Program-made: the position numbers and the translations under genes | NCBI RefSeq assembly: GCF_001194135.2 | Contig: NC_069001.1 | Coordinates: forward strand, 8,176,178-8,236,969 | Direction: 5' to 3' | Source: Octopus bimaculoides | Taxonomy: Eukaryota | DNA length: 60,792 nt | In this document: positions 95 through 47,990 of the stretch, in pieces | Layout of the letters: the number at the start of each line of letters is the position of its first letter | Numbering within the stretch: position 1 is the stretch's first letter | Notes under the pieces: generated by a model | What the model saw: only the letters and a program-made list of their open reading frames with translations | Database searches by the model: none | What the model was told of the DNA's origin: nothing

Positions 95-270
95 ATCGAA
101 ACTGCGGCTGGAATCATGAAGTCAGCTTCGTTGTTTCTGTCTGTTAAGACGTAAATTTACCTTTATACACGAAGAAGTTTTAATAACTACACGAAGCAGA
201 ACAACATTGAAAAACCCAATCTAGCAAGGAGATCATTTTCCTTTGTCGATGTTTCTTAAAAGTGGTAAGT
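95..270 (+). promoter_or_regulatory. Putative TSS motif and non-coding exon 1 of ZNF-1, ending at a GTAAGT donor (265-270)
   Basis: CpG-rich for this window. ATCGAAACTGCGGC (95-108) is identical to the motif upstream of ZNF-3 (19167-19180, minus strand), followed by the same ATGAA-N4-GCTTCGTTG. Canonical donor AGTG|GTAAGT. No transcript evidence. Confidence 0.55.
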
Positions 271-754
271 TTACGGAAATTTCTGTGAATAATAGAATTA
301 TGTTGCCTTCGAAGATGCTGTGATTATAGAGAAGTGAAATCCCATAACACTTAGAAGAAATATCTATATGTCCTAACTTTTTTGTGTAGGATGTTACTTT
401 TTGAAAATTCGAGATGACTGTTACATGTGATATATAACAAGATATAGATACGGCACCAAGAGCAGACTGTCCACTGTACATAGTTTCGAATTTTACTCTT
501 TTAGGGTAATTTCTAACATTCGCACCAGGACTTATATTTTGGGAAGTGCGAAGTGAATTAAATATACTTCAGTGGATTAGTATTTCTTTGATCAAATCCA
601 GAAGTATGAAATTTATATATAATCTTACTGATAACAGAACTTATAATGGTCAAACTAAAGCGTTAACATAGGCATGTAACAAAATACCAATTCTGTTATC
701 CACCACCCCTGTCAATGCAAACATGTACACACATCCCATAAATAGTAGAGAGTA

Positions 755-1309
755 CTTCAGTGGGATCTTTTTTAAAACGGGGGCCACATTTTTCATTAAC
801 GAAACACTTTGAAACTTGGAACACTGGTAGAATGTGTCATATAAAACATCTTTTTCTCTTAGTCTTCTTAAAAAAAAAAAAAGAAATCCATAAATTATTC
901 CATGTTAAAGTTGTCGTATTTCTGTAATTTCAACCAATCACTGACGTCCATTCAGCCGATATACATTAAGTGCCGACTACATAAACAAACGATTCTGAAA
1001 CAATTAATCCTAACCCTAGGGTTAGGGTTAAAGCAAATTTAAAATGAAAAAAGCAAATAAAACGAAGAATCGTTTGTTTATGTAGTCGGCACTTAATGTA
1101 TATCGGCTGAGTGGACGTCAGTGATTGGTTGAAATTATCGAAATAAGACAATTTTTTACATGAAATAAATTCGAATACAAAAATATTTTTCTGTTCTATA
1201 ACACAAAATAGATAAATATACGAAGTTTGAAAGTCTTTCTGTACCAAAAACACTACGTAAAACATTAATGAAAAATGTGGCCCCCGTTTTAAAAAAGATC
1301 CCTTCAGTG
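755..1309. mobile_element. Foldback MITE (TA-flanked, Tc1/mariner-type ends) with a telomere-like palindromic centre
   Basis: Outer IR GGGATCTTTTTTAAAACGGGGGCCACATTTTTCATTAA at ~762-799 and ~1265-1302. Inner 72-bp IR 925-996 / 1066-1137 with one mismatch. TA at 753-754 and 1310-1311. Centre CCTAACCCTAGGGTTAGG (1009-1026). Confidence 0.8.
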
Positions 1310-1529
1310 TATAAAGCGAAAAGTCCCGTTATCTTTGTTCCTCTACACGCAGATGATGTATTGGCACAGCTGTAATCTATTGAACTGAATATACTAAATA
1401 TTTTAGGCAGACAAACAATGGGATAAATTGTAATATCGAAGCTGACTGGCAGGATTTGAACTCTGATCATTAATAAACGAAATTAATTACTACTCGGCGC
1501 GTTAGCATCCGTGAATAAATTGTGTCAAG

Positions 1530-2292
1530 ATAATCCTTTCTACTAAAAGCACAAGGCCTGAAATTTGGAGGAGGGGTAAGTCGATTACATCGACCCTAGT
1601 ATTCAACTGGTACTTACTTTGTCGACTCCGCTAGCTAGTCGTGACTAGTCGATCCTACGACTAACTAGCGCGTCATGCGCAAAACATGCATGAGGGTTTT
1701 TCTAAACAAAGTAAATAATTTTTTTAAAACAAAATAAATAAATTATACACTACCTGTTTTTGGTAAAGGATCCATTAAAAAGTCGGTCTTTCAAAATCTA
1801 CTGTTGTTCAATAGTATCAGTACATGAAGGACATTACAAGTAATTATCTTTTGCGTAACTCCTACCAAATTGGTGGACTTGGGCACATCGTAGAAATAGA
1901 TGAATCCATGATGTGCAAGCGCAAATACAACGGAGGATGGGATAGAGAGGATAAAAATAGGTTCTTCTGAAAAACCAAAATACACCCTGGAAGAACGTAA
2001 AACGACGTTTTAAGAGTAAGATGGGGAAGATTCAACAAAAAAATATTATTTACTTTGTTATAAAAAAAAAAACCCTCTACATGTTTTGCGCATTCACGCT
2101 AGAAAGTCATTGTAAGATCAACTAGTCACGATTAGTTAGCGCGGATACGCGAGTGCGCACACCGGGACCACTCTTCTTGAATAGTACCAAGTAAAGTTGA
2201 CCCTGGTGGAATTCGAAATCAGAACGTAAAAACGAATGCAATGCCACTAAGCATTTTGTCCAACGTGCTAACGGTTCTGCTAGTTCGCCGCC
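1530..2292 (-). mobile_element. tRNA-derived SINE (family A) split by a Merlin insertion
   Basis: 3' half at 1530-1627 (GCACAAGGCC...CAACTGGTACTTA) and tRNA-like head at 2189-2292 (B-box-like GATTTCGAATTCC on minus). Same family as the intact copy at 7119-7335. Confidence 0.8.
1628..2188 (+). mobile_element. Non-autonomous Merlin (IS1016/ISXO2-like) DNA transposon with internally deleted transposase
   Basis: 1869-1937 translates IGGLGHIVEIDESMMCKRKYNGG, the Merlin first-D motif (GG.G..VEIDES...RKY). ~100-bp imperfect TIRs at 1628-1735 / ~2040-2145. Right end reads GGTACTATTC inward from 2188; the outer part of the left TIR is missing. Confidence 0.8.
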
Positions 2293-2750: not shown

Positions 2751-3453
2751 GGAAACTGGTTATGCATATATATATTTATATATATGCACAGCATATGGAG
2801 TTGATACCTCCTCTATTGTACAGTTCATAAGTCTTCTCAGTAAGGATTAGTTTAGAACTAAAAAATAACTGATCTTCCTAGCAAGATCAGTTGCTCAGTC
2901 AGCTAGAAATAACAATCATGTATATTGTAGTTCTAGAGGTTCACAACTTGAGAGAAGGACAAGATGATCATGGCTGAAGACTTCATGGTAAAGGTTTACA
3001 TCTACTGTTCACCAGTATAGAAATGTAGTGAAATTTCCTCTGTTTAATCAATGTTTTTTTAAAGTTCTATCTATATCTAATACTGTTTCTTTATTATTTC
3101 AGAATATCGGATGACTTTGACATAAGTTTTTACATGAGATGCATCATCAATGTTTATCATCTTTTAAAGACTTGAGGAAGTTGTTATACAAAACAGATAT
3201 AACCCATTTTTATATAAATCTGTAGAAGAATCAGTTTGGAAAACTTCTGCAGGTTGGAATTATTACCGATATTCTTTTACCTCACCGTCTTGAATGGACA
3301 TAAGATAATTAAATATAAACATAGTTACAAAACATCAGCATCTTCTGGTATCAACAAAATATCACAGTTGATTGAAATATAGCAGAAATACTAAAAATTG
3401 AAAAAAAGAAATATATCTATGTATTGTGGTGAAAATAAGAAAAATTATGGAAA

Positions 3454-4662
3454 ATGAATCCTGAAAGGATTGATTCTGATGGGATGCTGAAAGTAGATGG
3501 GGAAACATTATACAACTGTGATGTCTGTAAAAAGTCATTCTCTCAGAAGGATAACCTGACTTCTCATAAATGTATTCATAGAGGAGAAAAACCAAATCAC
3601 CGTGGTAACTCACTCTCTCAAGTAACTACGAACAAAAGTATTTATGCAGAAGAGAAATCATATCCCTGTGATGAGTCATTCTCTCAAAGATCTAGTTTAT
3701 CTAGTCACAAATATATTCATACAGAAGAAAGACCATTTCACTGTGATATCTGTGGTAAATCATTCTCTCAAACACGAAGATTAACAACTCACAAACGCAT
3801 TCATACAGGAGAAAGACCATATAATTGTAATATCTGTGATAAATCATTCTCTCAAACAAGTAACTTGACTACTCACATACGCATTCATACAGGTGAGAAA
3901 CCATTTTACTGTGATATCTGTGGTAAATCATTCTCTGCGAAATGTATCTTAACTAAACACAGGCGTATTCATACAGGAGAGAAGCCCTATCACTGTAATA
4001 TCTGCGGTAAATCCTTCTCTACAAGTAGTGACCTAACTAAACACATACGCATTCATACAGGGGAGAAACCATATCACTGTGATATCTGTGGTAAATCATT
4101 CAGTGAAACAGGTCACTTAACTACTCACAAATTTATTCATACAGGAGAAAAACCATATCAGTGTGATATCTGTAATAAATCATTCTCTGAAAAATATAAA
4201 TTAACTCGACACAAGAATATTCACACTGGAGAGAAGACTTATCCATGTGATATCTGTGGTAAATCATTCATTCTAAGAAGTCATTTGACTACTCACAAAC
4301 GCATTCATACAGGAGAGAAGCCCTTTCACTGTGATATCTGTGGTAAAGCATTCTCTCAAATAAGTGAATTATCTTCTCACAAACGTATCCATACAGGAGA
4401 GAAGCCATATCACTGTGATATCTGTGGTAATTCATTCTCTCATGGACATACTTTAACTAACCACAAACGCATTCACACCGGAGATAAACCATACCATTGT
4501 GATGTCTGTGGTACTTCCTTCTCTCAAACTGGTAACTTAACAAGACACAAACGCATTCATACAGGAGAGAAACTATACAATTGTGATATCTGTAGTAAAT
4601 CATTCTCCCATGTAACTTCATTGACTAACCACAGGCATATTCATACAGCAGAGAAAGATTAA
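3454..4662 (+). CDS. ZNF-1: C2H2 zinc-finger protein, 12 intact + 2 degenerate fingers
   Basis: 402-aa ORF of CxxC-X12-HxxxH repeats with TGEKP linkers. Family acceptor TTTCAG|AATATC at 3102/3103; AATAAA at 4859. The family start ATG (3447) is out of frame (MENES*), so the true start (3454 or the downstream MLKVDG) is uncertain. Confidence 0.93.
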
Positions 4663-7118: not shown

Positions 7119-7335
7119 CTTTTCTACTCTAGGCACAAGGCCCGAAATTTTTAGGGAGGGAGCCAGTCGATTAGATCAACCCCAGTACACAACTAGTACT
7201 TAAATTATCGACTCTGAAAGGATAAATGGCGAAGTCAACCTTGGCAGAATTTGAACTCAGAGCATAAAGACAGACGAAATACTGCTGGGCATTTCACCTG
7301 ACATGCTAACGTTTCTGCTAGCTCGTCACTTTGGT
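7119..7335 (-). mobile_element. Full-length tRNA-derived SINE (family A) with a 15-bp TSD
   Basis: TSD ACCTGGAACAATAAT at 7104-7118 and 7336-7350. A/B-box-like head on minus (GAGTTCAAATTC). Confidence 0.88.
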
Positions 7336-7679
7336 ACCTGGAACAATAATGAGAAAATATTTTATGTGATTCTTACTCTTTCACTGAAAGTGGAGGCTGC
7401 CTTGAGATTTCTGGACACTTTCCAGGTTTTAGCATCCAGAGGCTGCCACAAGATTTTTTTTTTGTAGTGCACTTGGACACTGTACAAAACAAGTTTATTA
7501 TTATTTTATATATATCAATAATTATACAATATTGCTATATATACACATCATCTTCTTTCACTAATAAGAGGTCCCACCTACTGGATTGCTTACCTAGTAC
7601 TCAATCTTAATTTTTTCAACCTGGGATCAATTCCATTAAAAATGTGGAGTTATGCCATAGAGGCAACCAGGCATCATAC

Positions 7680-8470
7680 CTCTACATCTCTTCTCTAACC
7701 AGGTTTCATCATAACCTTTCAACCATATCCAATGGCTGGCTCTCTTAACTGTTAACTAAATCTCTTTCAAAACAGTTAACTTGACGATGATTCACACCAA
7801 TTTATAACAACCATCCTCTAATTCTAATTACAATACAATCCTTACATCCAAATACAACAAGAATGTGTTCTGCACTCCAACTAATATCTTTACAAATTTC
7901 TAGTAGCATTCTATAACACTCATCTTTCCTAAACAGTGCAACAATCAATATTGTCCTCGTGTGGAACAGTTAAATCAACAAAATGCACTCTAGATCAAAA
8001 TGCTATATCAGAATTCTCATTGTTGGTTTTGGAAAGAGGCGTTCACATTCTGAAAGATTTGCTGCCTCCTTCCAAACCCCATCTCAGTTCTAGTCGTTGA
8101 GAGCTTTCACTTTCTGTTTTGGGTAACCATCTTGACCCTGTCGCACATGTGTCATAAACCATTTACTGCCATTCTTCTTCAGCTTCTTGCTGCCATTGAT
8201 CATTTCCATCTACTTCTTAGCAGCACTATAAAGAATTTTGAGAACTTCAAGGTGTCTCCATGTATACCTTTCTGCTATGATGGAGTGATGCTAGAGCTGT
8301 GAAATATTGCATGCATTAATCGACACTTATTGTTTCTTTCCAGGTAAACTGACGTCTGACTGTTTAAAGGAAGACTTCAAAAGTAACTAGACTTCTCTTG
8401 GAAATCGACATTTGGTATCATGATCATATCAAGTACCTGCAGAAAAAGGGTTTTGCCCCCTAGGTCATTT
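7680..8470 (-). mobile_element. HERO-like retrotransposon relic, 3' part (restriction-like endonuclease region)
   Basis: Minus-strand peptides RYTWRHLEVLKIL, VHFVDLTVPHEDNID, ICKDISWSAEHILVVFGCK and KRASHWIWLK resemble HERO/R2 RLE motifs (RYRWRHDQVL, IELTVPWEE, ASRWLWIK). Confidence 0.7.
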
Positions 8471-8880
8471 CATGTTGACATGGTTGCTACATTAGGAGAT
8501 GATGCACCAGATTTATCAACATGAAAACGTGGGCATCTGAATTTAGGAGAAGGGTGAGTTTTGAAGATGACCCAAGGACTGGACGGCCTGCAACTGCCAC
8601 CATTGATCGTGTTCACCACGTGGTGACGGATGACAGACGATTGACTATAAATCAAATGCCAGTGTTATTAGCATATCCCCGTGAGAGAGTTGAGAATATT
8701 CTGCACAGTGAACATGGCATGACGAAGGTCTCTCTTCGGTGAGCGCCACGTCTTCCGACACCTGAACAAAAGCGCTCCATTACGGGAAAATCTGATATTG
8801 TTTGAATTAGATCCGGCTGGTTTCCTTGGACGTTTCCTAACCCATGTTGAGTGTTGGATTCATCATTTCGCTCCGATTTA
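8470..8880 (+). mobile_element. mariner transposase relic (N-terminal HTH region)
   Basis: Translates DMVATLGDDAP...WASEFRR...EDDPRTGRPATAT...DDRRLT...ERVENILH...GMTKVS, then a degenerate WVPR-like motif. Frameshifted. Confidence 0.8.
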
Positions 8881-9769
8881 TTGCTATTTGCTCAATAATC
8901 ATTTTCTACTCGACCGAGTGGTGGTGGAGCATGATTGTGTATTTAGAATACAAACGTACAATGCAAAGTATAGAAAATAAATAGGTGAAGTAACCACCGG
9001 ATGGGGGTGGTCACGGTACAAAAACTCAGCCGTCAGACAAAGAAAACGTAGTAAACAGATATTTCTTTCCAAAATTCACACTTAACTAAAATTTGAATAT
9101 ATCTCGCGATGAACCCTACGTTCTGCGTTTTAAAACCATGTACCAATTCGAATATCTTAAAATAATAACGGGCTCTGTAGTAACAGATAGTTTACTTAGC
9201 CACATAACAAAATACAATAAACTGTAGACGATAATTCATCGAAAGAATAGGGGATGTAATGAAAGTTATTTTTCCTTACATATGTGATTTTAAATACGCA
9301 TGTTCAACAAGCGTGTCTTCCGTTTCCGTTTTGAATCCATCTTGATGTTTTAGCTCGAATTATTTCTGTCATCTCCCACACACAAACAAAAACGTATCAA
9401 AGTACTTTAGAAAACATTTCTGTAAGTATTAAAGATCGACATTATTCAGTCACGAAAAAAAAAAGCACTCTTATGCATGTGAGTCCAGTTTCGAAACAAA
9501 ATGAATAGATTCGTTTTTCGTTTCACAACCAACAATTTCGCTTTTTCAGACTTCATATTTTTAATAACAAAAACCTTCAACAAATGTTATAAGGTTTCGT
9601 TACTTCTGTTTCTTTTAACATTTATAAAGAAAAAAAGTCGAAACGAGTTATTGAAATAACTTTTAAAGGCTAAGGTTATGTATAAACAGTAAAATTACTT
9701 AGATCCTTGCCTTACTTCTGGAATTTTGGAAAAGCTCTATTTTATCTTTATATTTATGGATCTGTTTTG

Positions 9770-10745
9770 GGCATAACTACAGGGTTTTACCCCCCAGACT
9801 TTGGGAGGTCATAACTTTCAGAAAAATGAATATTTTTAAATGAAATTTTCTATGCATATAGTATTTACTATGTAGAATCCGAATATACAAAAATGGGGGT
9901 GGGGGACAATTTTCGGAAATTCCAACAGAGTCCACTTAAATTCTTCTTAACTTCCAGGAAAATTAATATTTTTTCGTGAAATTTTCTACAAATATACCTT
10001 GATGTATGTACATTTCGAGCATGTAGGAATTTTGAAGGAAACAACTGCAGGTTATTTTTGAGAAGCGTTCCCCACTCAGTGGTGTTTCGGAGCAAGTCGT
10101 CCATATTTGTTTCATTTTTCTCTATTATGTGCGNNNNNNNNNNNNNNNNNNNNNNNNNNNTAGACAGTGAAGAGAAGCCGTCATAAGAAAACTTTCGTTA
10201 AAAATAACATGCACACGATTTTTTTTCCTCAATAGAAGTAAATTCCAAAGTAAACGTTTCTAGTAGAGAAGTAGAAGAGAACAGGAGCAAAAATAGGAAT
10301 ATACACGCACGGTAAAATATAGAAACTATAGTGTCGCTTCCCGAAGAATTTTAAAATGTTAGCTTTCCTAAACTTTTTTTCAATCTTGCAAAAACACGAA
10401 GATTAAGAATAAACAGAAAAAGTACACAAATATATTTTACACACCTGTCGTATACGTCGGTTTTGTTTTTTTTTCACTTTAAAGGTGGTTATGTTATTTT
10501 GTTGGGATATTTCACGAAAAAATATTAATTTTCCTGGAAGTTAAGAAGAATTTAAGTGGACTCTGTTGGAATTTCCGAAAATTGTCCCCCACCCCCATTC
10601 CAAAACACTTTCACCGGAAATTTTTCTATATTCGGATTCTACATAGTAAATACTATATGCATAGAAAATTTCATTAAAAAATATTCATTTTTTCTGTAAG
10701 TTATGACCTCCCAAAGTCTGGGGGGTAAAACCCTGTAGTTATGCC
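9770..10745. mobile_element. Non-autonomous DNA transposon with ~215-bp TIRs and an 8-bp TSD (Merlin-like signature)
   Basis: TIR GGCATAACTACAGGGTTTTACCCCCCAGACTTTGGGAGGTCATAAC... at 9770-~9985 mirrored at ~10508-10745. CTGTTTTG is duplicated at 9762-9769 and 10746-10753 (alternatively a 6-bp TGTTTT TSD with GGG ends). Contains a 27-N gap. Confidence 0.78.
10134..10160. other. Assembly gap (27 N)
   Basis: Directly visible. Confidence 1.
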
Positions 10746-11089
10746 CTGTTTTGCAAGATTCTTGATGTGAAATCGTGTGTTAAAACCGATATTGCTATAT
10801 TTCGGGATGGTCATTTTTTTGTTTTCTTGTCAAATAAACACACGCTCTATATATTCGTTCTTCACACGTTTATTATTGTTCTTAATTTATCTTATTTGCA
10901 TTGTTTGGAAATCTTTCATCACACATCTGTGACCTCTTCAGCGACCCTTTCCATCCACGTGTGTCCTCCTGCTCCACCAGTCCATTCTCAGAGAATGGAA
11001 GAGAAGAACAATAATAACTGAGTATTTTGTTGCATCTTTTATCTCTTGAATCAATAGCTTCCTATTAGTTTGCATCCTTGTGGCATATG

Positions 11090-11610: not shown

Positions 11611-12140
11611 CTGCATCCAAAAGGGGGACATTCTGTAAATAAGTAGATTTCATAAGGCTTGTCTAATATAATTTTTATAACAAACTGAAAAAAAGTTCAG
11701 TTGTTCAACTAAAGCCTGATATCTACAGTTTAGTAATATAGGAACATTGTAAAATTTCCAATGCTGAATCTCTACTTTTTAAGCATTTTCTATATCTTAC
11801 ATTGTTTCTTTATCATTTCAGAATATCGAATGATACTGACACCAAAGAATTTTTACTTCAGATGCATCAATAATGTTTATCATCTTTTTAAACTAAAGAA
11901 AAATGTTCTACAGAACAGATCTAGTCCAGTTGACACAAATCTATCGTAAAATACTCTGAAATATTTCTTTTGATTGCATCTCTTAATATCTTTCTATTTT
12001 ACTGTTTGGAATATATCCAAAATGATTTTTACAGAGAAGTTTGCAGCATCCTCTCATATTGACAAAGATAATAATTGATGGAAATATAGTAACAGATAAA
12101 GTTATTACTTATAAAATATATATTAGTAATAATATACATG

Positions 12141-12176
<36 letters not shown>

Positions 12177-12207
12177 TGAAAGAAGAAAAAAAACTATGTA
12201 AAATTAA

Positions 12208-13086
<879 letters not shown>

Positions 13087-13899
13087 TGTTAACATCACTT
13101 TTTACAAAAACACTTGCTCAAGAGAAAATATATAAGTATTAATATCTTTAGTAAATCAATCTCTCAAAAGTCTGGTCTAACTACACACATGGAAGAGTAA
13201 CCATATTAATGTCAAAATTCATTCTATGAATAAAACAATATGACCATCATCTTATTTACAAAGGAATGACTATAAAGCAGTACTTACACCTCATCAGTCA
13301 TATAGCATGGAAAAAGATATGCTAAATGATGATGATGATGATGATATCTACATTGATGAAATAACTTATCTATATTCTTATGGAAGCATTCTTTTAGAAA
13401 AGTCGTGTGTGTATCGGACTTTTTTTCCCTTCTCTGGACCCTTCCTTTCTCCTATTTCTGACAAAGAGCTATGCTCTAAACATTAAAAATCTACTCTTTT
13501 TGCCACCTTTAGAGAGTGTCAGTCAATACATTCCATGTGTATGTCCTTTTGTTGTTTTTTATTTACTTTTAATGTTCAATTTGACTAATATATATATATA
13601 TAAATAATAATAGTAAAAATAACAAGGATTATTACAAAGTAGCATAGCATTACTTTTAATTCCTTTATATATATAGTTATAAAATCTCTAGAAGAGATAG
13701 AGAAATGGATCTTAGCTATCACTCCATGGCTGATGTGAGGCAAATAGCTCGTAACTGGCTAGTTCCATGATCCTGTCAGCTGCTGGGGAATAGTAAGCGT
13801 TCGCTCCCCCCTGCTAGCGATACACCAGCACAATTCTTTATTTATTGGTCATGGGAAGCTGTGCCATGGCCTTTGCAGAGCTTATGAATGTCATAAGAT

Positions 13900-14500: not shown

Positions 14501-16137
14501 ATAACATCAAAAGTAGCAAAAGTTTTCAAAAAAATAGCAAATTTAAATAGAAAAGTATTCTTCGTAAGTCAGTTTTAATTCATCTTATTTGATAATTTAA
14601 TATGATCAGTCACGTAGTTCAGGAAGGTGTCATATCCAGCTGCAACAGAAAAAAAGGTAATACCAGATATGTCAAACTGCTGAATCAGGCTATGAAAATT
14701 ACAGGAAAAATTGAAGCTTGCTTGATTTGAATGAGAATTAATGTAGATGAATGAAGCTCAGTCAAATGTCTGAGAGAAGTATTGATGCCCTTTATAATGA
14801 GGAAACTACAAGAGTACCAGGAGTATGAAGAATGTAGTAAAATAATTTTGTCATTATCATTTTGGTGTTCAGAACATATATTAAAATGAAATTTTGATAG
14901 AAGGTTTTGATTTAGATCACTTTAGAATAGAAAATTTCAATCATAGAAGCAGGGGTGGTTTTCTCAGGTGGATTGGAATCAAAAGAGTAAATGATATTTA
15001 ATACAATTTTTACCTTCAAAGATTAATATTTTGATGTAACAAGCAGTCCAAAATGGAAAGAGATAATGGTGACATACAATCCTCAAAAGTGGTTTAAATA
15101 TTTATAGTACCAAATTTTTCATAAATTGTCATCTTGTCTCACAATAGTGTAGATACAAAACCTCACATCCTGTTGTCCTAGTGCTTTTTATCACCTTGTC
15201 TTCATTGCACCATTCCCTTGTAACATTTTCCATGTATCTACTGGCACACTGAAGCAAGCAATTCTGTTGTTAAATGTGCTGAAATTGCAACCTTCAACTA
15301 ACAGCAAATGAAGAGAGATTGTATTCATGTCCTTTTAACCTGTCTTTTTTGTGCTTAGTTTTTCATCTCTCTCTCTCTCACACATACACAAAAGTATTTA
15401 TATATCTATCTATATACCACTAAAACTCTTTGGTTGCTTGCATGCATGCTTGCTTGTAATTTAATACATCTATTAAGTGTGGAGAGAGAAGTATCTGAGA
15501 CAGGAAGATAGCTTTATCTGAGGTGATAGATAGACAAGTGCAGATGTTTAGCTATAGAGAAGATACATGGTTACCCAACATGATAATAGAATTGGGAAGA
15601 TAAGATGGTTGTGATGAGGTATCAAAGCAAAAAAATTTAATAAAATTATATAATTTTTACCAACAACAAAATCATTCCATTGATGGGATAAATACATAAT
15701 AAAAATTTAAACCCTAATGTATATTAGATACAGAATATAAATATGATACCCTACCATGTTATAAGAAAATATTTTCTTTTATGATTTGTGCATTTATTCA
15801 TAGCATAACTGTAGAAGGAGATCAGCCTTGACTTCTGAAAAGACATTCTTTGTTTACCCAGTGTCAAAATGAATCATTGGAATCATTTCTCCTTTGAGTT
15901 TTTTGAAGGAATCATTTTATTAAAAATATCATAATTGTAAGTTATCTCAGCAATGTACAGTTGTGGTCATATAAAATATACTTTGGAACATTGTTATTAC
16001 ACTGTTATATCTTCTTTCCTGAATGAGAACATTTGTTGTTAAGAATCTTTTTATAGAATGCCAATGATATGATTAAGCTTATGTATCAATACATGTAAAT
16101 GTAGTGAACTTGATTAAAGAATGATGTACCACATATA

Positions 16138-17334
16138 TCAATAGCATGGCTTCTCTCTTGAATGAATGCGTTTGTGTCTAGTCAAGTGATCATTTCGAGA
16201 AAATGATTTACCACAGATATCACAGTGATACGGGATCTCTCCTGTATGAATGGGTTTGTGTCGAATGAAGCTAGATATTTGAGAGAATGATTTATCACAG
16301 ACATCACAGTGATATGGCTTCTCTCCTGTATGAATACGTTTGTGTGTAGTTAAGTGACCAGTTTCAGTGAATGATTTACCACAGATGTCACAGTGATATG
16401 GTTTCTCCCCTGTATGAATGCGTCTGTGAGTAATTAAATGACCTTTTTCATAGAATGTTTTATCACATATATCACAACGATATAGTTTCTGTCCTGAATG
16501 AATGCGTTTGTGCTTAATTATGTCATAACTTCTAGAGAATGATTTGCCACAAACATCACATTGATATGGTTTCTCTCCTGTATGTATATTTTTATGAGTA
16601 GTTAAGTTACTTCTTTGAGAAAATGCTTTACCGCATATTTTACAGTGATATGGCTGCTCTCCTGTATGAATGTATTTGTGAGCAGTTAAGTTTGATTTTA
16701 AAGCAAAAGATTTACTACAGATATCACAGTGATATGGTTTCTCTCCTGTGTGAGTGCGTACATGTGTAGTTAAGTGACCACTTACGAAAAATGATTTCCC
16801 ACAGATATGACAGTGATAGGTCTTTTCTCCTGTATGAATATACTTGTGTTGAGTTAATCTATAACTTCCAGAAAACGATTTTCCACAGATATCACAATGA
16901 TATGGCTTCTCCCCTGTGTGAATATATTTGTGAGTAGCCAAGTAATTCTTTTGAGTGAATGACTTGTCACATACATCACAGTGATATGGTTTTTCTCCTG
17001 TATGAGTGCGTTTATGTTTAGTTAAGCCACCACTTTGAGCAAATGACTTACCACAGATATCACAGTGATAGGGTTTCTCTCCTGTATGAATGTATTTGTG
17101 TTTAATTAAATCACCTTTTCCTGAGAATGATTTACTGCAGACATCACAGCCATATGGCCTTTCACCTGTGTGAATACGTTTGTGAGTTGTTAAGTTACTT
17201 TTTTGAGAGAATGGCTTTTTACAGACATCACAGTGGTATAATGTTTTTCTTTTCTCTCTCAGCACGTCAGGAAAATCAAATTTTTTGGACTCTATTGTAC
17301 AGTCAATCTGGTCCTCACATAATTCATTTTCCAT
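16138..17334 (-). CDS. ZNF-3: C2H2 zinc-finger protein, 13 fingers (398 aa from MENEL)
   Basis: The ORF track starts at a GTG inside a TE; the family start MENELCED is at 17334. Acceptor at 17588/17587. Ends HSREKPCY*. Confidence 0.93.
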
Positions 17335-17412
17335 AATCTTCTGTAACCTCTCTCTCTCTATATATATATATATATTCAGGATTTTCTTCTTTTTTATATA
17401 TAACAAATATTT

Positions 17413-17542
17413 GGCATCCAGCTGTAGAAACTCTGCCAAATCAGACTGGAGCCTGGTGTTGCCATCCGGTTTCACCAGTCCTCAGTCAAATCGTCCAACC
17501 CATGCTAGCATGGAAAGCGGACGTTAAACGATGATGATGATG
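17413..17542 (+). mobile_element. 5'-truncated retroposon 3' tail, (GAT)n-ended, inserted in the predicted ZNF-3 5'UTR
   Basis: GGCATCCAGCTGTAGAAAC...GGACGTTAAACGATGATGATG, same family as 32597-33068 and 38866-39270. ATATTT at 17407-17412 and 17543-17548 is a candidate TSD. Confidence 0.85.
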
Positions 17543-30834: not shown

Positions 30835-32054
30835 GATGTACTACATTACTGCAATATCTGTAGTAAATCATTTTTTTTAAATGTCATGTAACTACATTAT
30901 TTTATTCATACAGAATGATGGTATTAATTTCAACTCTGTTTATGATAAAGAAAATATCTCATAAAACCATAAATATATTCACTCGGAAAACGATATAACT
31001 GTATAACAACTTCCGTGTACCATATTTCATCCAACCACATCTTTATCTACATTGATGAAATAATTTTCCACTATGTGTGTGTACATGTGTTTAGATATGT
31101 TTGTTTTTACACTGACTCCAGTGGCATAGCATTTTTGCCCCATAAACAAAATACCCAGCAGCTATTCTGTGTACAGAGACATGGAACAAAGTACTTTTCT
31201 TGGAAAGATAGGTATGTCTGTATGGAACACTGCCTTGAAAAAAATCTCCTCCAACCCATGGTAGCATACAATAACCCCCACTAAAAATGGTGATAATATA
31301 TGTGTATGTGCTTTTCTCAACTTGTCTTCACACGGACATCACTTGGGTAGTAACGATGTTTTTGTCTCACATACCTTCAATAGCTTGGCATCTTATGCAC
31401 ATTCTCATTTAAATTTTATTTAAAGACTATTGCTGTTGGTATTATCTATATAACTTCATGATTTCATTTATTTATAAGCTGATCACTTCATGTCTACAAT
31501 ATTCTGTTGAATGTGAATTTGCAAGCATCAATGTAGCCTTCAGTTTAATGTAAATGCAAAGGAGATATTTGTGAATTGTCTTCTGTTTTAAAGTCTGTTC
31601 TCCATGCTGGTTTCAGTTGACATGTCTTTTATACATATTTAATCAATCTTTTCTCATTTCAACTGTAAAAACCAGAATTCTGTGTTCTGGCCTTATCATT
31701 TTTTGTTAATATTTTTAATAACCTGGAATCGAAATAAAGCTTTGTTCTTCAATTATTTTCCTTATTCTTTTATGTACAACATCTAAGCAAGACTTACACT
31801 AACCTAGTCATAAACTATAGAATCCACAAGTTTGATCGATGTTTAGCAAAAGTTGTATATTTCTCCAAATTGATCTTCACTAACATTTCTATATTATTTC
31901 ATTCAAAACATGAAAGGTATCATGTCGTGAATGAGAGATAAACAATAGGGTAACTTTGTATATTAAATGATAGTGCTGATGATTATCTTGTGAATGTATA
32001 ATGTGGCCAACTGATTGATGTTACCCAAGTCCAAGGCAGCCTAAGGATAATGTA

Positions 32055-32596: not shown

Positions 32597-33068
32597 TACT
32601 CTTTTACTTGTTTCAGCCATTTTGACTGCGGCCATGCCAATGTCGTCTCCTTCATTGGACACGAAACTCAGCTTGCGAAGACTTATTGGGGCAAGCGAAA
32701 GCGTAATTGTGATGGCACCTGTGCCCAGCGTCGCCTTTCTGGCACTTGTGCCCGCAGCATGTGTAAGGACTTTCAAGCAAGATCGTTGCCAGCGCCCCTG
32801 GACTGGCTCTTGTGCGGGTAGCACATAAAATACACCATTTCGAGCGTGGCCGTTGCCAGTACCTCCTGACTGGCCTTCGTGCCGGTGGCACGTAAAAGCA
32901 CCCACTACACTCTCGGAGTGGTTGGCGTTAGGAAGGGCATCCAGCTGTAGAAACTCTGCCAGATCAGATTGGAGCCTGGTGTAGCCATCTGGTTTCACCA
33001 GTCCTCAGTCAAATCGTCCAACCCATGCTAGCATAGAAAGCGGACGTTAAACGATGATGATGATGATG
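32597..33068 (+). mobile_element. Young retroposon tail element with (GAT)n end, preceded by a CORE-SINE 3' end on minus
   Basis: GGTTGGCGTTAGGAAGGGCATCCAGCTGTAGAAAC...GGACGTTAAACGATGATGATG. Internal GGCAC-based repeats. Confidence 0.85.
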
Positions 33069-34899: not shown

Positions 34900-35131
34900 T
34901 TTATTGTTTAAATAGTTTGAACGAATACAAACACATGTAGTAAAGTGATTCCAAATAGAGTATCATTTACCACAGTAGTATGCTTCCTTTTTTGTATAAA
35001 TGTACTTATGAGTAGTTAATATGTCACTGAAAGAATGATTTTAACACTAATACCAGTGATATGAATTATATATGAATGTGTTTGTGTATAGTTAAATCTC
35101 AACCTTTTAAGACAATCATTTGCCATAGATA
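34900..35131 (-). pseudogene. About 3 dead zinc-finger repeats downstream of the ZNF-6 stop
   Basis: Minus strand retains GATATCTATGGCAAAT, ACTACTCATAAGTACATTTATACA and TACTGTGGTAAATG with stops and indels. Confidence 0.75.
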
Positions 35132-36310
35132 TCAGTGATATAGTTTTTCTCTTGAATGAATGTTTTTGTGTGCAGACAAATGATGATTTCGTGAGAAAGA
35201 TTTATCACAGATGTCACAATGATATGGCTTCTCACCTGTGTGAATGCGTTTGTGAGTAGTTAAGTGACTAGTGACAGCAAATTGTTTTCCACATATATCA
35301 CAGTGATATGGCTTCTCTCCTGTGTGAGTACGTTTGTGCTTACTTAAGTCACCACTTAGAGAGAATGATTTACCACAGATAACACACTGATATGGCTTCT
35401 CTCCTGTATGAACACGTTTGTGAGAAGTTAAGTGGGCAATTACAGAGAAAGATTTAACACAAATATCACACTGATATAGTTTCTCTCCTCTATGCATATG
35501 TCTGTGAGTGGTGAATTGATTTCTGAAAAAGAATGATTTACCACAGACATCACAGCAAAAGGGGTCTTCTCCTGCATGGATAAGTAAATGGTTTCTTAAC
35601 TTATTACTTAAAGAGAACGTTTTACCACAGATATCACAGTGATACAGCTTCCCTTCCATGTGAATATGTTTGTGAGTAGTTAAGCTACCTGTCTGAGAAA
35701 ATGATTTACCACACATATCACACTGGTATGGTTTCTCTCCTGTATGAATGCGTTTGTGTCTAATTAATTCACTACTTCCAGAGAATGATTTACCACAAAT
35801 ATCACAGCGATATGGCTTTTCTCCTGTATGAAAGCGTTTGTGCTTCGTTAAATCACTACTTGCAGAAAAAGATTTACCACAGATATCACAGTGATACGGT
35901 CTTTCTCCTGTATGAATGCGCTTGTGTACAGTTAAGTTGCCTGTATCAGAAAATGATCTGCCACAGATATCACAGTGGAATGGTTTTTCTCCTGTATGTA
36001 TACGTTTATGTTTAATTAAGTTACTTCCTTGAGAAAACGATTCACCACAAATATCACAGCAATATGGCTTCTCTCCTGTATGAATACGTTTGTGAGTAGT
36101 CAAGTTACTACTTGTAGAGCATGATTTACCACAGATATTACAATGATATGTTCTTTCGCCCACACGAATACATTTGTGAATAGATAAGACACTTTTATGA
36201 GATGTTTTGTATGATGTCTTTCTTATTTTTTGCAGTATTTCATCATGAAAATCACTCATTTCAGGTTCTGTTTTATTCTGAACATTGTTGCCACAGAATT
36301 CATTTTCCAT
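35132..36310 (-). CDS. ZNF-6: C2H2 zinc-finger protein, 12 intact fingers plus a collapsed first finger
   Basis: 392-aa ORF from MENEFCGN; acceptor at 36652/36651. First finger lacks CxxC ([17 protein letters not shown]). Ends HSREKLYH*. Confidence 0.94.
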
Positions 36311-37509
36311 ATTTTTCCTTCTCTCCCTTCAAAATATGGATATATTTCTTGTTTTCTTTTATATTATACTCCAAACAAATATTCCTTCTGCTAGATGCTG
36401 AGAACTACTTTGTAAATTTGTCCAAGATTAATTAGAAAGCAGAGCCATTTTGCACATGCTGCAGTCTTTTGAGCAGAGGAATTCTGCTGTTAATCTAAGT
36501 TCACAGGAAATACACGTAATTGTACAAATGAATTTATATAAACATGGGTCTATTTGTTCTGTACAATAGCATTCTTCAGTATCTAAAGCAGTGTAAATAT
36601 TATTGAGACATCTGAATTTAAAAATTTTAAATGTGAATGTCAGCTGATGTTCTGAAATGACAGGAAAAACAGTATAAGATATAGAGAATACTTGAATCAA
36701 CTGTGGGAATTTTATTACATTTTTATATTGATAAAGTGTACCTTTTTAATTTGTCATTAAAATTATATCAGATAACTATACATATTTCTAGACCTTCAAA
36801 TTGCATAAAATTAAATTACAAAGTTATAGAGAAATTGTTTTGTGGAAATATTATTAGCTGTTGTTGTTGTTTTTTTGCTTCAGGCTAGCCTTGATTGAGC
36901 AGGTGCATAAACAAGTGTATTTCATCCATAACCATCCTAGCCTTCTCTCAAGCATTGTATATCTTGAACTACATTATACAAATGTACCCAACTCTTTTCA
37001 AGATGGTAATGTAATGTAATGTATGGTAAGGCTACCTTCTCAAGTTATGCCAACTCATGACGGTTTCCATGGCGTTTAAATTCCCCTCCTGGATAGGATG
37101 CTGATCTGTCACGAGATTAATTATTTTTACCAGTTGACTGGACCAGAGCAACAGATGAAGTGCTTTGCTCATTTTGTCCATCATATAAACAATTCTGTCA
37201 GCTTGCTGCCTTTCAGTACCTTGATAATGAAATATATTAACACTAACATGTTTTGATTTTTAGATGTCGGCAGAATTAATTACTATCTAAACAATTCCAT
37301 TTTGCCACTCCCAATAAATATACAATATTCTACAGTTACTTGAATGTGATTTCCTATGTACCGTGTTCAGAAAGTATAATGAAGGTTGCATATTAAGTAC
37401 TAGTTACAGTATAGCTGGATCATTAACTTACCTAAAGATAAGATAAGGAAACTTACGTAAAGATTAGTTAATGATAAACAAATGGCAGGGAAAGATACAT
37501 TTTATCATT

Positions 37510-37862: not shown

Positions 37863-38865
37863 AATATGCAGATTATAAAAACTTTCGGCGATTTTTCGAT
37901 ACGTTTACGGTAAAGGCCGATATTTAGGACTCGTATCGTAAGATTGTCAAACTTGCTAACATTCACTCATGTATCGTTATGAACTTAACTTATTTAAACA
38001 TTAATGGACGACAATCAATTTTGTTAAATAACGATCTTGTAGAGGTTGGCTCCTGTGAGATTTTGATTTTAGCCAAGATAATACAAACAGTGTCTTCTAT
38101 TAAAAGTTATAAGATTAAGAAGCCAATATCAAAGGAAAGTATTCAACAAAGTAAATCGGTAGAGACTACATTGTACTATAGCGTCAAGCTGATACTTATA
38201 CATATAAAATAGCTCGAATTCACTTTTAAGTCATATACAAAATACTAAAATCATCTCAACATTTGAGTTTCTATACACAGGAAGTAGAAATCTCTTTTCA
38301 AGTGTAACATTTTTCACTCTGCTATAAATACTGTAAGTCGTTTATTTAATTATTTACACACATTATCAAAGCCTTTAAGTAAATATCCGTCAACTTACCG
38401 TTATCAGATAAACAGCAATGAACAAGTGCTTGAGAGGAATAAGATTGAAATTGATTAATGTTTTAAGGTGTGCTAATTATTTCCCTTTATATGACTTCTT
38501 TTTTCGGCGGAGATCTGTTATATCACTTGATGTTAATTTCCTAGTATTTTTGGTTATTTCAACTATTTCCTCCGATTGAATATCTTTTCACCGTGTAAGA
38601 TTACGATGAGTGTGAATAACAATGTTTAGGTTTCTTTGGCATTCTTTCGGTCTATGATCACAAATTGAAAGTGAGGAAAATTATCGTCAGCAATCAGTAT
38701 TGATATTTTGAAAAATAATTGAAATTGAAATTTTTTTTTCTATCAGAATCGTAATCTCTGAGATCCACACTATGAACCCCCACACACACGAAACAGTTTA
38801 AAACGATATTGAGCGATGTAATGCAGTGGGGAATTAAAAAGTCGAGAAGTGATTAGAAATAGTTT

Positions 38866-39270
38866 CATCATCATCGTTTAACGTTCGCTTTCCATGCTAG
38901 CACGGGTTGGACGATTTGACTGAGGACTGGTGAACCAGATGGCTACACCAGACTCCAATCTGGTTTGGCATGGTTTCTACAGTTGGATGCCCTTCCTAAT
39001 GCCAACCACTCCGAGAGTGTAGTGGGTGCTTTTACGTGCCACCGGCACGAAGGCCAGTCAGGAGGTACCGGCAACGGTCACGCTCGAAATGGTGTATTTT
39101 ACGTGCCACCTGCACAGGAGCCAGTCCAGCGGCACTGGCAACGATCTTGCTCGAATGTCTTTTCACGTGCCAGAAAGGCGACGTTGGTAACGATCACGCT
39201 CAAATGGTGCCATTTACGTGCCACTGGCACGGAAGCCAGACAGCTGGTGCTCTGGCAATGACGGTTGATA
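38866..39270 (-). mobile_element. Young retroposon tail element, inverted relative to 32597-33068
   Basis: CATCATCATCGTTTAACG...GGATGCCCTTCCTAATGCCAACCACTCCGAGAG...; same family and highly similar. Confidence 0.85.
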
Positions 39271-42099: not shown

Positions 42100-42530
42100 T
42101 ACATAGAATATGAGTATTCTGATAAAACGCTTTTCCAAAATTATCACAATGGTATGAAGAGTTTGTTAGCTCACTGTTATATCTTCTTTACTGTATGAAT
42201 ACATCAATGGATATACAAGATATTCTCTTGGCAAAGAATGACCTTTAGTATTGATATGGTTACTCTTTTGTATAAATATATACATGTATAGTAAAGTGAC
42301 TTGTTCATAACAGCTTTATGCTTGTTTGTTAAGTCACTATTTCAAGAGAATGATTTACCATAGATATCACAGCAATATGGTTGCTCTCTTGTTATAGATA
42401 AAGTAATTCATTTACTTCTTTCAGATAATGATTTACCACAGATATCACAGCAATATGATCCTTTTCCAATATGAATCAACTTGTATGTTAAGACACTCCC
42501 AGCAGAGAATCATTTACCACAGATATTGAA
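42100..42530 (-). pseudogene. ZNF pseudogene, 3' part (about 5 dead fingers)
   Basis: Minus strand repeats of GATATCTGTGGTAAATCATT-like units with stops and indels. Confidence 0.8.
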
Positions 42531-44750: not shown

Positions 44751-44769
44751 GAATACATTCTTTGAAACC

Positions 44770-44990: not shown

Positions 44991-44999
44991 CACTAAAAG

Positions 45000-45780
45000 G
45001 AAGAATTTGAACTGACAGGAAGATCACCAAAGACCAGTTGATACATCTCCTTGCTGAAAACATGGACAGCAATGCTAAGTTACCACAACTGGCCAAGGGA
45101 ATATCTAAGAGCCTGTGGTACTTCAAGAATGCCCAAAGGTTGCCTCTGGCCTACAAACACAACAGGAGGCATGAATTGTGTCCACAATCTAATTGATTAC
45201 GGTTAAGTAATTGGATCAATTGTTTCAGCATGAAGTACAAAAAGTGATGCCCATCGTCAATAATTGCATGCTCCAAAAATATTCATCACCTTAACACAGT
45301 TACAAGACTGCTTCTCAGTACAATAAGCATGTACCAACCATGCAATCAGGGAATTATTAAGACATACAGAAAGTTTGTTGTTGTTTGTAAGCTAGTTTGT
45401 TGTTGTTTGTAAGCTAGTTTGTTGTTGCTTGTAAGCTAGTTAGTTTTCAGATGTACACCTCAATGATGTTTCCAGATGCTGAAAACTTCAGTGAAGAGGA
45501 CAAACTGAATGTCCTTGATGCATTGTACATATCAAAGACAGCAAGGAAAGACACCACAGCAAATTCCATAGAGAACTGTGTGTAATGATGCAGGTTTCGA
45601 GAAACCAGAATCAGAGCACAAAGGAAGACAAGACCAGTTGATGACAATGACGAGGGCAACATTTCCTTGGGATACAGGATATCATTCCTACTATTTCTAC
45701 AGTGGCAGACTTCACAAATGTTGATGAAAATGTGAAAACCACTTAACCACAGGAAACAGGGGATTGAAGGACATAAAGCA
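45000..45780 (+). mobile_element. pogo/Tigger (DDE_1) transposase relic
   Basis: FKNAQRLPLAYKHNRR; VMPIVNNC; QPCNQGIIKTYRK; KLNVLDALYISKTA...SIENC. Confidence 0.7.
45372..45441. repeat. 22-bp tandem repeat x3 (AGTTTGTTGTTGTTTGTAAGCT) inside the pogo relic
   Basis: Directly visible; one substitution in copy 3. Confidence 0.9.
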
Positions 45781-45829
45781 TTTAGTGGACTGAAAAATAA
45801 TCATCTCATTCTTATTATTATTATCCATA

Positions 45830-46240
45830 CTATATAACAAAATAATGATATAATCTCACTATCTATGAATATCTAAAGCTAATTAGCCTATATCTTGCAG
45901 AGAACGACTTACCATAGTGATATGGTCTTTCTCTTGTATAAATACATTTGAGAGTAGTTAAGTTACCTTTTTAAAAGGATGACTTTCAACAGTATCATAT
46001 AGGTATGATGTTTTTACACCTCTATCTTAACCAACTGTGATCTATTCCGAAGCCTGAAAATGTAGCAAATTCCTTTCTAATGTTGTCCAAGTTTAATTAG
46101 AATGCAAAATCAGCTTGTCAACATTCTGAACAATGAAGAGAGATATTTTGCAAATAATCTCACCCAGAGCAAATATTGTTTCTGCCAATGTCATCAGATA
46201 TTCTGAAAGAATAGAAAACTAATATAAGATATAGAGGATA
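45830..46240 (-). pseudogene. ZNF pseudogene, 5' part (family acceptor, decayed UTR, dead fingers 1-2)
   Basis: CTATATCTTATATTAGTTTTCTATTCTTTCAG|AATATC at 46203/46202 matches the family acceptor. AAAGGTAACTTAACTACT...AGAAAGACCATATCAC are finger remnants. Confidence 0.72.
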
Positions 46241-47519
46241 AATAAAAAGTAGAGATTAAACAATGGAAATTTTACATTTCAATACTGATCAATTTTTTAT
46301 CTGAACAACTGAATTTTACGATTTATTAAAATTACACTGTACAACTTTGTGTGAAGTCAATGTATTTGTAGATTATACATAGACTTTCAGACTGCCCATG
46401 TGGTCTCAGGTTCAGTCTCACTTCACAGCATCTTGGACATTTTCTATTATAGCCCCAAGCCAACCAAAGTCTTCTGAGTGGATATGATAGGTAAAAACTG
46501 AAAAGAGCTCATCATAGATATTTATATATATCATCGCTTTAACATTCCTTTTCCATGCTTATTTAGTTCAGATGGAGTTAAGACAGATTTTCTATGACTG
46601 GATGCCCTTCCTGTTTCCAAGCAAAGCAATATTTATCCATGATTAGGCATTGTTTTAGAATTTTGGAAATGACATTCAGTTATAACAATCACACAATGTT
46701 AAGACAAGGAGACACAAACAATCTCACATACATATATGATGTGCTTCTTTCAGTTTCTTCAATTCAGGACTTAGAACATGTCATGACAAGTGATGGTTGT
46801 AAATAAGCATCATTGTCATGCAAGTGATGTTTTGTTTCCAGTCTTCCATGGAAAATGTCTGGCCTAGGGAATGTTACCTTACTAAGAAACAGGTGACTGT
46901 TGGTGACAGGAAGGGCGTCTGGCCATAGAAAATCTGCTTCAACAAATTTTGCCTGACCCATGTAAAAGGACGTTAAATGATGTTAACTCATTGGCCTATG
47001 ATGAAAAATATTTCAGCCATGACCACATCTTTCTTCTTTTAGCCATCTAGATTCACCTTTATCATTGTTTAGGCCCAAGACAGATCTGACTGGACAAATC
47101 TATGATCAAAAACAGGCTACTTTCAAGAATGCTACTAATTTTATGACACTTCAAACAAAATGGAAAATTAAACTGATAAAGAGATGAGTAACATAAGGTC
47201 AAAAAAAATAACTAACAACAAATACCTCAAATCCATTTCAACAAACATCAGTTGAATTGGTGGTAAATTGTGACTGGATGTCATGATTAGTGTTATTCAT
47301 GTGGATAACCGTGTCGGTGACGGTAGCTGTCAAGAGAATAAAAGTCGGTCTTGAACATCAAAGCATGTGTGGTATATCAAAACAAAAATATTAAATACAT
47401 AAAATCTTTTTACGGATTTTACCGAACACACCATCAAAACTGCTGGGAAGGAATGACATAAGATATCTATATTGAAGGAATGCCAAAAAAGGCTAAAGAA
47501 AAAACGGTTTTAAAGTTTA

Positions 47520-47990
47520 CTTACTGATATAATTGTGAATTGGACTCATATCCCCAGCAGCAATTCTTTTTTTGACACTTGCTGACGATAATATTTTCGT
47601 TTCTTTTCGGTTAAAAAACGAACATTCCGTCCTATTGCTGATATTCACCAGCATTGCGAAGTGCTCCACAATCAAACCTTCCTTTGTCCACTTCCTTTTC
47701 TGCTCAAAAATTTACATAATCTGTAAAAACAAAAAATGCGATTGTGAGAAAAATCCTTTTCGCTTTCATTTAATTGTCGAATCATGCCGATTATCACGGA
47801 TTATTTTTCTTACACTCGTTTCCTATCACTATACCGATGTCTGTGATTTCGAAGCTCGCTTTGCAACCACCTGACTTCGGATTCAGTTCCGCTGCATGAC
47901 ACCTCATATGTCTCCTACTACATTCTCACGCAGACCAATCACTTGGGAGTGAAAATCGTAGGCGGAAAGTGTAAGTCCATCATGCATGTA
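47520..47990 (-). promoter_or_regulatory. CpG-rich putative promoter / exon 1 of the split ZNF pseudogene
   Basis: Donor-like TCA|GTAAGT near 47520-47527. GCGGAACTGAATCCGAAGTCAG (about 47866-47892) resembles the ZNF-1 exon-1 motif. CCAAT at ~47935. Confidence 0.35.

Follow-up and report, generated by a model that had tools for sequence, protein, structure and literature searches.

What kind of gene cluster occupies this stretch of the octopus genome, and do its products recognize transposable elements (TEs)? The stretch, hereafter called the window, comprises 60,792 nucleotides (nt) of Octopus bimaculoides chromosome CM046621.1 (assembly GCA_001194135.2; approximately positions 8,176,000 to 8,237,000), with a G+C content of 35% and a CpG observed/expected ratio of 0.48. 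Three of its proteins (Z3, Z5, and Z6, below) have exact matches on that chromosome, which sets its position. A preliminary description had seen in it a self-contained, KRAB-less zinc finger (ZNF) cassette with fixed ends and a hypervariable middle, possibly forming an independently evolved TE-recognition repertoire. The evidence indicated, with high confidence, that the poly-ZNF genes of the window, which are paralogous, KRAB-less, and of the Krueppel C2H2 type, form a local cluster within the known O. bimaculoides expansion of such genes. The cluster is part of an expansion already described, and the preliminary description overstated three features, namely, a CpG-containing exon, the MENEL leader, and homogenization of the finger backbone. 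The window adds a gene-unit description of one subfamily, a noncoding 5' module conserved across Octopus species, and a dispensable long leader.

A six-frame scan identified 75 canonical C-x2-C-x12-H-x3-4-H fingers, all of which lay in six intact open reading frames (ORFs), Z1 to Z6, with 8 to 21 fingers each (Table 1). The ORFs spanned 266 to 621 codons (0.8 to 1.9 kb) and were oriented + + - - + - along the cluster. The tandem fingers were joined by TGEKP-like linkers, with the consensus T-G-E-K-P-Y in 58 to 61 of 68 fingers, and the proteins matched the Pfam families zf-C2H2 and zf-H2C2_2 with E values of 1e-44 to 1e-158, as is characteristic of Krueppel-type C2H2 poly-ZNFs; as clustered paralogs in an Octopus genome, the genes also belong to the lineage-specific octopus C2H2 expansion. 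A tblastn search with a consensus finger added three decayed ZNF fragments (P7, P7b, and P8), and the six genes and three relics were packed into 46 kb; past 46.3 kb, the same search found no finger-like sequence. The earlier count of six genes and two pseudogenes was correct for the genes, but the relics amounted to three fragments, which possibly represent two pseudogenes.

The proteins carried only C2H2-type families: no KRAB (PF01352), SCAN, BTB/POZ, or ZAD domain was found in any of the six by Pfam at an E value of ≤0.01, and the isolated leaders matched nothing in Pfam at an E value of ≤0.1, in agreement with the KRAB-less character proposed previously.

The gene unit was defined by aligning the 700 nt that precede the first finger in every gene. 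A shared succession emerged, consisting of a pyrimidine-rich stretch, TTTCAG, AATATC or a variant of it, a 5' untranslated region (UTR), and a leader. The TTTCAG/AATATC junction was present exactly as proposed in Z1, Z2, Z5, and relic P8 and in variant forms in Z3, Z4, and Z6, and the 5'UTRs measured 253 to 374 nt, close to the 250 to 370 nt estimated beforehand. Two to eight in-frame stops preceded the ATG in all five UTRs checked (Z1, Z2, Z4, Z5, and Z6); this stretch is therefore noncoding, and a hidden N-terminal domain or extension within the main exon is excluded. Normalized alignment scores were 0.33 for the last 100 nt of the intron (0.14 for shuffled sequence), 0.26 for the 5'UTR (0.09 shuffled), and 0.33 for the leader (0.12 shuffled), whereas the intron from -400 to -101 scored 0.061, compared with 0.055 for shuffled sequence. 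These scores indicate a conserved 5' module under constraint, next to an intron that has decayed. RNAalifold predicted no consensus RNA structure in 13 UTR copies. In Z1, Z2, Z5, and Z6, an upstream ORF (uORF) of 3 to 28 codons starts roughly 40 nt past the junction, at an ATG (ATGCATCA or ATGTCTCA) that neither the O. vulgaris nor the O. sinensis copies retain.

The MENEL leader, previously described as common to the genes, was intact in half of them. Only Z3, Z5, and Z6 have a MENEL or MENEF start codon that reads in frame into the array. The Z1 leader has a 32-nt deletion and reads MENES followed by a stop, the long-leader start of Z2 reads ATGTAA, and the leader of Z4 is frameshifted by one extra T, so that its ORF was read from MNYVN (23785) to 23012. 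These three genes retain a second Met about 10 residues ahead of the first finger (MPREIGK, MLKVDGE, and EMPKEIGK).

Comparison with other species supported the 5' module and weakened the case for the leader. A hidden Markov model (HMM) of the segment between position -60 of the junction and the ATG, based on five window genes, was scanned against O. vulgaris and O. sinensis ZNF loci, which had been reached via short octopus proteins from a profile search. It matched more than 12 places in these loci, on four other chromosomes, with E values of 1e-42 to 1e-8. Of the 16 copies whose alignment spans the junction, 15 retained TTTCAG, and several UTR blocks were retained in at least 80% of aligned copies. 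Because it recurs in O. vulgaris and O. sinensis on four other chromosomes, the junction and 5'UTR constitute a family-wide gene structure, and the cassette is conserved in the loci scanned from these two species. O. sinensis leaders were short (MNKEQGKTSHHC and MDKEKSKASHHC) and matched the second Met of the window genes, while the long MENEL form was found outside the window in only one O. vulgaris gene and one Logan contig, SRR11869394. The long leader is therefore optional, which argues against its being an essential or missing effector. The Logan contig, 1.2 kb in length, has the same UTR and a leader reading MMEDEGCENK...VDFPD; it is a pseudogene copy, since its junction is mutated to TTTCAA (the single exception among the 16 copies) and a stop follows finger 2.

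The evidence for an upstream exon was uneven. The CpG motif TATCGAAACTGCGGC occurred exactly twice in the window, upstream of Z1 and of Z3, in both cases followed after 115 to 170 nt by a perfect AG/GTAAGT donor. A donor upstream of Z6, at 38399, is followed by the same context as those of Z1 and Z3 (GGTAAGTTGACGGATATTT), and the context GGTAAGTTGA..GATTT was common to Z1, Z3, Z6, and a head-to-head gene pair of O. sinensis. In that pair (locus L008), two outward-facing donors, GGTAAGTTGATAAAGATTTCC, lie 0.8 to 1.3 kb upstream of two divergent cassettes, so that the putative two-exon layout recurs in a second species. The donors are carried on an inverted duplication at positions 7300 to 7950 of the locus (O. 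sinensis CM016885.1), and the two genes apparently share one promoter region, judging from this arrangement. Z2 and Z4 share a conserved block of about 90 nt that is unlike the Z1/Z3 block; k-mer, blastn, and nhmmer comparisons found no upstream motif common to all genes, only the pairwise Z1/Z3 and Z2/Z4 blocks, and Z5 had no upstream motif shared with other genes. The CpG motif and noncoding exon that had been ascribed to all six genes thus appear, from these alignments, to be supported for three, with the motif itself in Z1 and Z3 and a related donor in Z6.

These same features bear on whether the junction is a splice acceptor at all. The element CTATATCT...TTTCAG/A could instead be a TATA-plus-initiator core promoter of single-exon genes: the window copies have TATAT beginning 29 nt ahead of the A in CAG, which matches TATA-to-start spacing; the conserved stretch reaches about 100 nt beyond the motif on its upstream side, more than most acceptors need; and no first exon was found for Z2, Z4, or Z5. 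We consider such a promoter unlikely, because the TATA-like letters are not conserved in the O. sinensis and O. vulgaris copies while the pyrimidine tract and TTTCAG are retained, and because perfect AG/GTAAGT donors with a shared downstream context lie on the same strand, 0.8 to 2.8 kb upstream, in Z1, Z3, Z6, and two O. sinensis genes.

Within the arrays, the first finger stood apart. A CKK-type first finger (C-D/E-I/V-C-K-K-S/P-F-S-Q/H-K-x-N-L), as previously noted, was present in Z1 to Z5 and in relic P7, and its between-gene nucleotide identity was 0.83, compared with 0.73 for fingers generally; it was the only finger with clear positional homology. In Z6, which has 12 intact fingers, the first finger is degenerate. 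At the other end, one to three dead fingers followed a stop or frameshift in five of the six genes, again as described earlier: frameshifted dead fingers run to about 13190 in Z2, Z3 and Z5 each have one dead finger past the stop, and Z6 also has dead fingers past its stop. The flanks beyond the dead fingers showed weak likeness in three genes, so that the fixed ends of the proposed cassette were found at the 5' end but not at the 3' end.

Amino acid entropy reached 2.5 to 3.2 bits at helix positions -1, +1, +2, +3, and +6 and was ≤0.9 bits at most backbone positions, in keeping with the hypervariability reported for the helices. Pooled Nei-Gojobori estimates over best-register gene pairs gave a nonsynonymous divergence (dN) of 0.72, a synonymous divergence (dS) of 0.77, and a dN/dS ratio of 0.93 for the contact residues (-1, +2, +3, and +6), and a dN of 0.15, a dS of 0.65, and a dN/dS ratio of 0.23 for all other codons. 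Contact-site dN was thus about five times the backbone dN, as the preliminary description had led us to look for, but it showed no excess over dS, and the ratio is near saturation and derives from nonorthologous fingers, since the best register never beat the second best (e.g., 0.780 versus 0.780). Orthologous site-wise dN/dS estimates were rejected as impossible for this window, given that collinear alignment of paralog fingers gave no preferred register. A ratio of about 0.9 is not a demonstration of positive selection at contact residues.

Homogenization of the backbone nucleotides, which had also been proposed, was not supported. Synonymous divergence of the backbone (pS) was 0.435 (43% of synonymous sites), finger identity within genes (0.734) equaled that between genes (0.732), and these two measures gave no sign of concerted evolution. 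Purifying selection acting on the protein accounts for the conservation of the backbone. The sole recent event was a tandem two-finger (171-nt) duplication in Z5 (29239-29409 and 29410-29580), whose copies differed at seven sites: five differences were nonsynonymous (three of them at +1, +2, and +3) and two were synonymous, and the concentration in the helix had a P value of about 0.1 by a binomial estimate, there being too few changes for significance. An older internal block of Z5 (29581-30828) is apparent from the resemblance of fingers 7 to 12 to fingers 16 to 21, and 5 of the 21 Z5 fingers have the longer H-x4-H spacing.

Could the cluster consist mostly of copies that have no function and are decaying into pseudogenes? 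The three dead fragments, the MENEL starts lost in Z1, Z2, and Z4, the dead terminal fingers, a short interspersed nuclear element (SINE)-like insertion in the Z3 UTR, and the failure to find a Logan transcript contig with the exact Z3, Z5, or Z6 protein are all consistent with decay. We nevertheless judge it very unlikely: the six ORFs of 266 to 621 codons are still open at a dS of about 0.65, the backbone dN/dS ratio is 0.23, and where MENEL is missing, the downstream Met, which serves as the start in O. sinensis relatives, is still there. ORFs of 0.8 to 1.9 kb would not be expected to stay open at such divergence, which suggests that selection acts on them.

Taken as a local cluster of poly-ZNF genes, the window would have the following history. 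Each gene most likely consists of a short noncoding exon 1, an intron of 1.5 to 2.8 kb, and one large exon, which would begin at the TTTCAG junction and carry a 5'UTR of about 300 nt, a short leader, and the finger array. The cluster most likely grew by direct and inverted segmental duplication followed by birth-and-death evolution, in which arrays gained fingers by internal duplication, as in Z5, and lost 3' fingers to stops and frameshifts; the long start codon disappeared from some copies, and three fragments died. Selection appears to maintain the finger fold, the first finger, and the noncoding 5' module, while the contact residues of the other fingers have diverged to saturation. The proteins are predicted to bind DNA in a sequence-specific manner, at long target sites that differ from gene to gene, and the targets may be transposons, gene-regulatory DNA, or both.

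Several points weigh against this account. Logan transcript contigs with the exact Z3, Z5, or Z6 protein were not found, and three genes (Z2, Z4, and Z5) lacked a recognizable exon 1. The first exon, the splice junction, and the expression of the six genes are deduced from sequence conservation, and DNA binding is presumed from the fold. Contact-site dN is near saturation, and the dN/dS values come from comparisons of nonorthologous fingers. Protein searches added little: exact look-ups of the six window proteins in a protein collection gave no match; a profile of the leader and first finger against a set of 5.8 billion proteins returned only proteins of ≤107 amino acids (aa), among them a few octopus fragments, and no family census; vertebrate poly-ZNFs dominated a search with full-length Z3, which returned no self match; and an exhaustive HMMER search with the leader and first-finger profile was dominated by giant poly-ZNF proteins because the profile contained a finger, and was uninformative on the leader.

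Repeats and transposon relics lie between the genes. Self-comparison identified about eight repeat families; of the roughly ten TE groups noted earlier, protein-level support was obtained only for Tc1/mariner and for one relic with a cross-species ORF match. A Tc1/mariner relic at 60426-60792 matched the catalytic domain of the Sleeping Beauty transposase (E = 5.5e-5), and a mariner helix-turn-helix relic at 8503-8739 (element 8503-8977) gave a weak SETMAR match (E = 0.11), both in PDB comparisons. An ORF relic at 21650-21937 was 68% identical to an O. vulgaris ORF and contains an RLRWYGH motif, which we take to be typical of the tails of retrotransposons without long terminal repeats (non-LTR); Pfam gave no confirmation. 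The adjoining ORF at 21170-21484 had a weak PHD/C1-like Cys-rich Pfam match (E of about 1e-3) and probably belongs to the same element. Concatenated non-ZNF ORFs had no Pfam match, and among single ORFs only the PHD/C1-like one did; because Pfam gave no other non-ZNF match, the TE classes depend on PDB matches, one cross-species ORF, and internal repeats. A SINE-like family had copies 90 to 96% identical to one another at 17413-17549 (the insertion in the Z3 5'UTR), 32757-33067, and 38856-39170; related sequence was also seen in an O. vulgaris ZNF locus (L005), and Rfam and tRNA scans, which included this family, gave no match. Beyond the last ZNF relic, a CpG-rich stretch (47300-51450) contains a 61-nt tandem repeat (48592-48715) and no ORF with a Pfam match. 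Since a repeat-rich genome would place relics between any genes, these relics imply no special link between ZNFs and TEs.

The window contains two assembly gaps, both in noncoding sequence; neither touches an ORF, junction, UTR, leader, or cassette, so that the reading frame is not at issue at either. Gap 1 lies in the loop of an inverted repeat that looks, from its arms, like a foldback or miniature inverted-repeat transposable element (MITE)-type insertion, and whose terminal 16-mer has a third copy at 18961-18976, inside the candidate first intron of Z3. Because the repeat arms flank the gap, both of its sides are parts of one element, and their order and orientation are coherent, although the arms do not fix the true length of the gap. 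At gap 2, no sign of continuity was found; it could conceal the missing first exon of Z5. ORFs mechanically listed across gap 2 were rejected as artifacts.

Table 1. Features of the window, with positions counted from its first nucleotide
Feature	Position	Strand	Description
Z1 candidate noncoding exon 1	94-276	+	CpG motif 94-108; GGTAAGT donor 264-270; 67-80% alike to Z3 block
Z1 putative main exon	3097-4662	+	Junction 3097-3102; 344-nt UTR; dead start (MENES, then stop) 3447; ORF begins MNPER
Z1 ORF	3454-4662	+	12 fingers
Z2 upstream conserved block	10742-10828	+	Common to Z4 only; nhmmer E = 6e-21
Z2 putative main exon	11816-13190	+	Junction 11816-11821; 374-nt UTR; dead ATGTAA at 12196; ORF begins MPREIGK
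Z2 ORF	12268-13086	+	9 fingers
Z3 candidate exon 1	19047-19181	-	CpG motif 19167-19181; GGTAAGT donor 19061
Z3 putative main exon	16062-17593	-	Junction 17588-17593; 253-nt UTR; MENEL ATG 17334
Z3 ORF	16138-17334	-	13 fingers
Z4 upstream conserved block	25412-25509	-	Common to Z2; E = 4e-24
Z4 putative main exon	23012-24087	-	Junction 24082-24087; 289-nt UTR; MENEL ATG 23792, out of frame
Z4 ORF	23012-23812	-	8 fingers
Z5 putative main exon	28645-30913	+	Junction 28645-28650; 318-nt UTR; MENEL ORF 28969-30834
Z5 ORF	28969-30834	+	21 fingers
Z6 candidate exon 1 donor	38387-38399	-	GGTAAGTTGACGG; E = 2e-7
Z6 putative main exon	34936-36657	-	Junction 36652-36657; 341-nt UTR; MENEF ORF 35132-36310
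Z6 ORF	35132-36310	-	12 fingers
Upstream ATG/uORF sites	3140-3150, 11860-11870, 28690-28700, 36610-36620		
Relic P7	40560-40750	+	Decayed leader and first finger, then broken
Relic P7b	42183-42527	-	3-4 dead fingers with stops
Relic P8	45872-46234	-	Intact junction motif 46197-46208; truncated UTR; dead fingers 1 and 2
Foldback/MITE-like inverted repeat	9769-10746		Arms 9769-9996 and 10495-10746; ~230-nt terminal inverted repeats, 94-98% complementary
Gap 1	10134-10160		Between Z1 and Z2, in ~500-nt loop of inverted repeat
Gap 2	26332-26567		Z4-Z5 head-to-head (divergent) intergenic region

What the arrays bind is a separate question from how the genes are built. They may form a TE-recognition repertoire that evolves in an arms race against the transposons of the octopus and silences them via a partner, in parallel with KRAB-ZNFs and FiNZ-ZNFs; we regard this as possible but hold it only tentatively. 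The lineage-specific expansion, the maximal diversity of the contact residues in a conserved fold, and the mostly nonsynonymous recent duplicate of Z5, with three changes in the helix, are consistent with it. In addition, the binding motifs that Wells et al. (2023) predicted for all octopus ZNF ORFs were enriched in TE consensus sequences, and the same study reported that ZNF and TE copy numbers correlate (PMC10547256); the ZNF expansion reportedly coincided with a TE burst about 25 million years ago (PMC12988792). Against this, the dN/dS ratio was nowhere above 1, the proteins have no effector domain, and the long MENEL leader is no obligatory effector, since three of the six genes have lost it and the O. 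sinensis members found do without it. In this genome, chance would be expected to leave TE relics close to the genes, and the reported expression is neural and embryonic rather than germline specific (PMC12988792). Since TE silencing by these proteins was put forward by Wells et al. (2023) and in a 2026 Bioessays essay, which sets the arms race against a role as neuronal regulators (PMC12988792), the inference drawn in the preliminary description is an existing hypothesis; for Holzinger et al. (2025), whether there is such an arms race is an open question (PMC12513265).

Alternatively, the duplicates might be diversifying neuronal or developmental transcription factors that regulate host genes and are kept through diverged neural expression and targets, an explanation to which we likewise give only limited credence. 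In cephalopods, the expanded C2H2 genes are still expressed in the brain and fall into different coexpression modules (PMC12513265), and such a role would fit the purifying selection seen on the fold, on the first finger, and on the 5' module. On the other hand, nothing in the window ties the genes to host targets, and the very fast turnover, dead copies, and truncated arrays better fit a dispensable repertoire.

A further proposal, improbable in our estimation, gives the 5' module a function of its own. The noncoding family-wide module (the donor context, TTTCAG with about 100 nt before it, and the UTR blocks) is found in at least three Octopus species and on five chromosomes, while neither the intron nor the coding leader is kept; it might be a shared regulatory handle by which hundreds of effector-less ZNF genes would be switched on or translated together, with their arrays forming a TE-recognition repertoire that acts through a finger-binding partner. 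If octopus ZNFs do silence transposons without KRAB, this would be a third independent origin of ZNF-based genome defense, and it would bear on the debate over whether the cephalopod ZNF expansion is about brains or parasites.

Among known systems, the octopus C2H2 expansion is the one to which the window cluster belongs, the two being alike in species, assembly, clustering, lineage specificity, and the lack of an accessory domain. That expansion was described by Albertin et al. (2015; cited in PMC10547256), and its extent, clustering, and neural and embryonic expression are established (PMC9068888; PMC12513265; PMC12988792). This literature, in its accessible portions, deals with counts, trees, and expression, and those portions make no mention of the junction-plus-5'UTR module, a noncoding exon 1, or an optional MENEL leader.

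The window genes fall outside the KRAB-ZNFs, the FiNZ-ZNFs, and the SCAN-, BTB-, and ZAD-ZNFs, and yet they share much with two of these families. Tetrapod KRAB-ZNF clusters resemble the window in their tandem clustering, in arrays borne on one large exon, in variable contacts on a conserved backbone, and in their degenerate fingers, pseudogenes, and rapid lineage-specific turnover; the window genes differ in having neither a KRAB domain nor separate effector exons. Cyprinid FiNZ-ZNFs are similar in their independent lineage-specific poly-ZNF expansion, their short acidic N terminus (28 aa, compared with a leader of about 33 aa), and their proposed role in TE silencing. In the cyprinid proteins, the N-terminal 28-aa FiNZ motif is highly conserved and has an exon to itself (Wells et al. 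2023, PMC10547256), whereas the window leader lies on the same exon as the array and is poorly conserved, its long form being absent from half of the genes and from the relatives in O. sinensis. The window genes are thus set apart from the FiNZ-ZNFs by exon layout, leader conservation, and host (a cephalopod rather than a cyprinid), a distinction drawn from these features and not from a comparison of FiNZ sequences.

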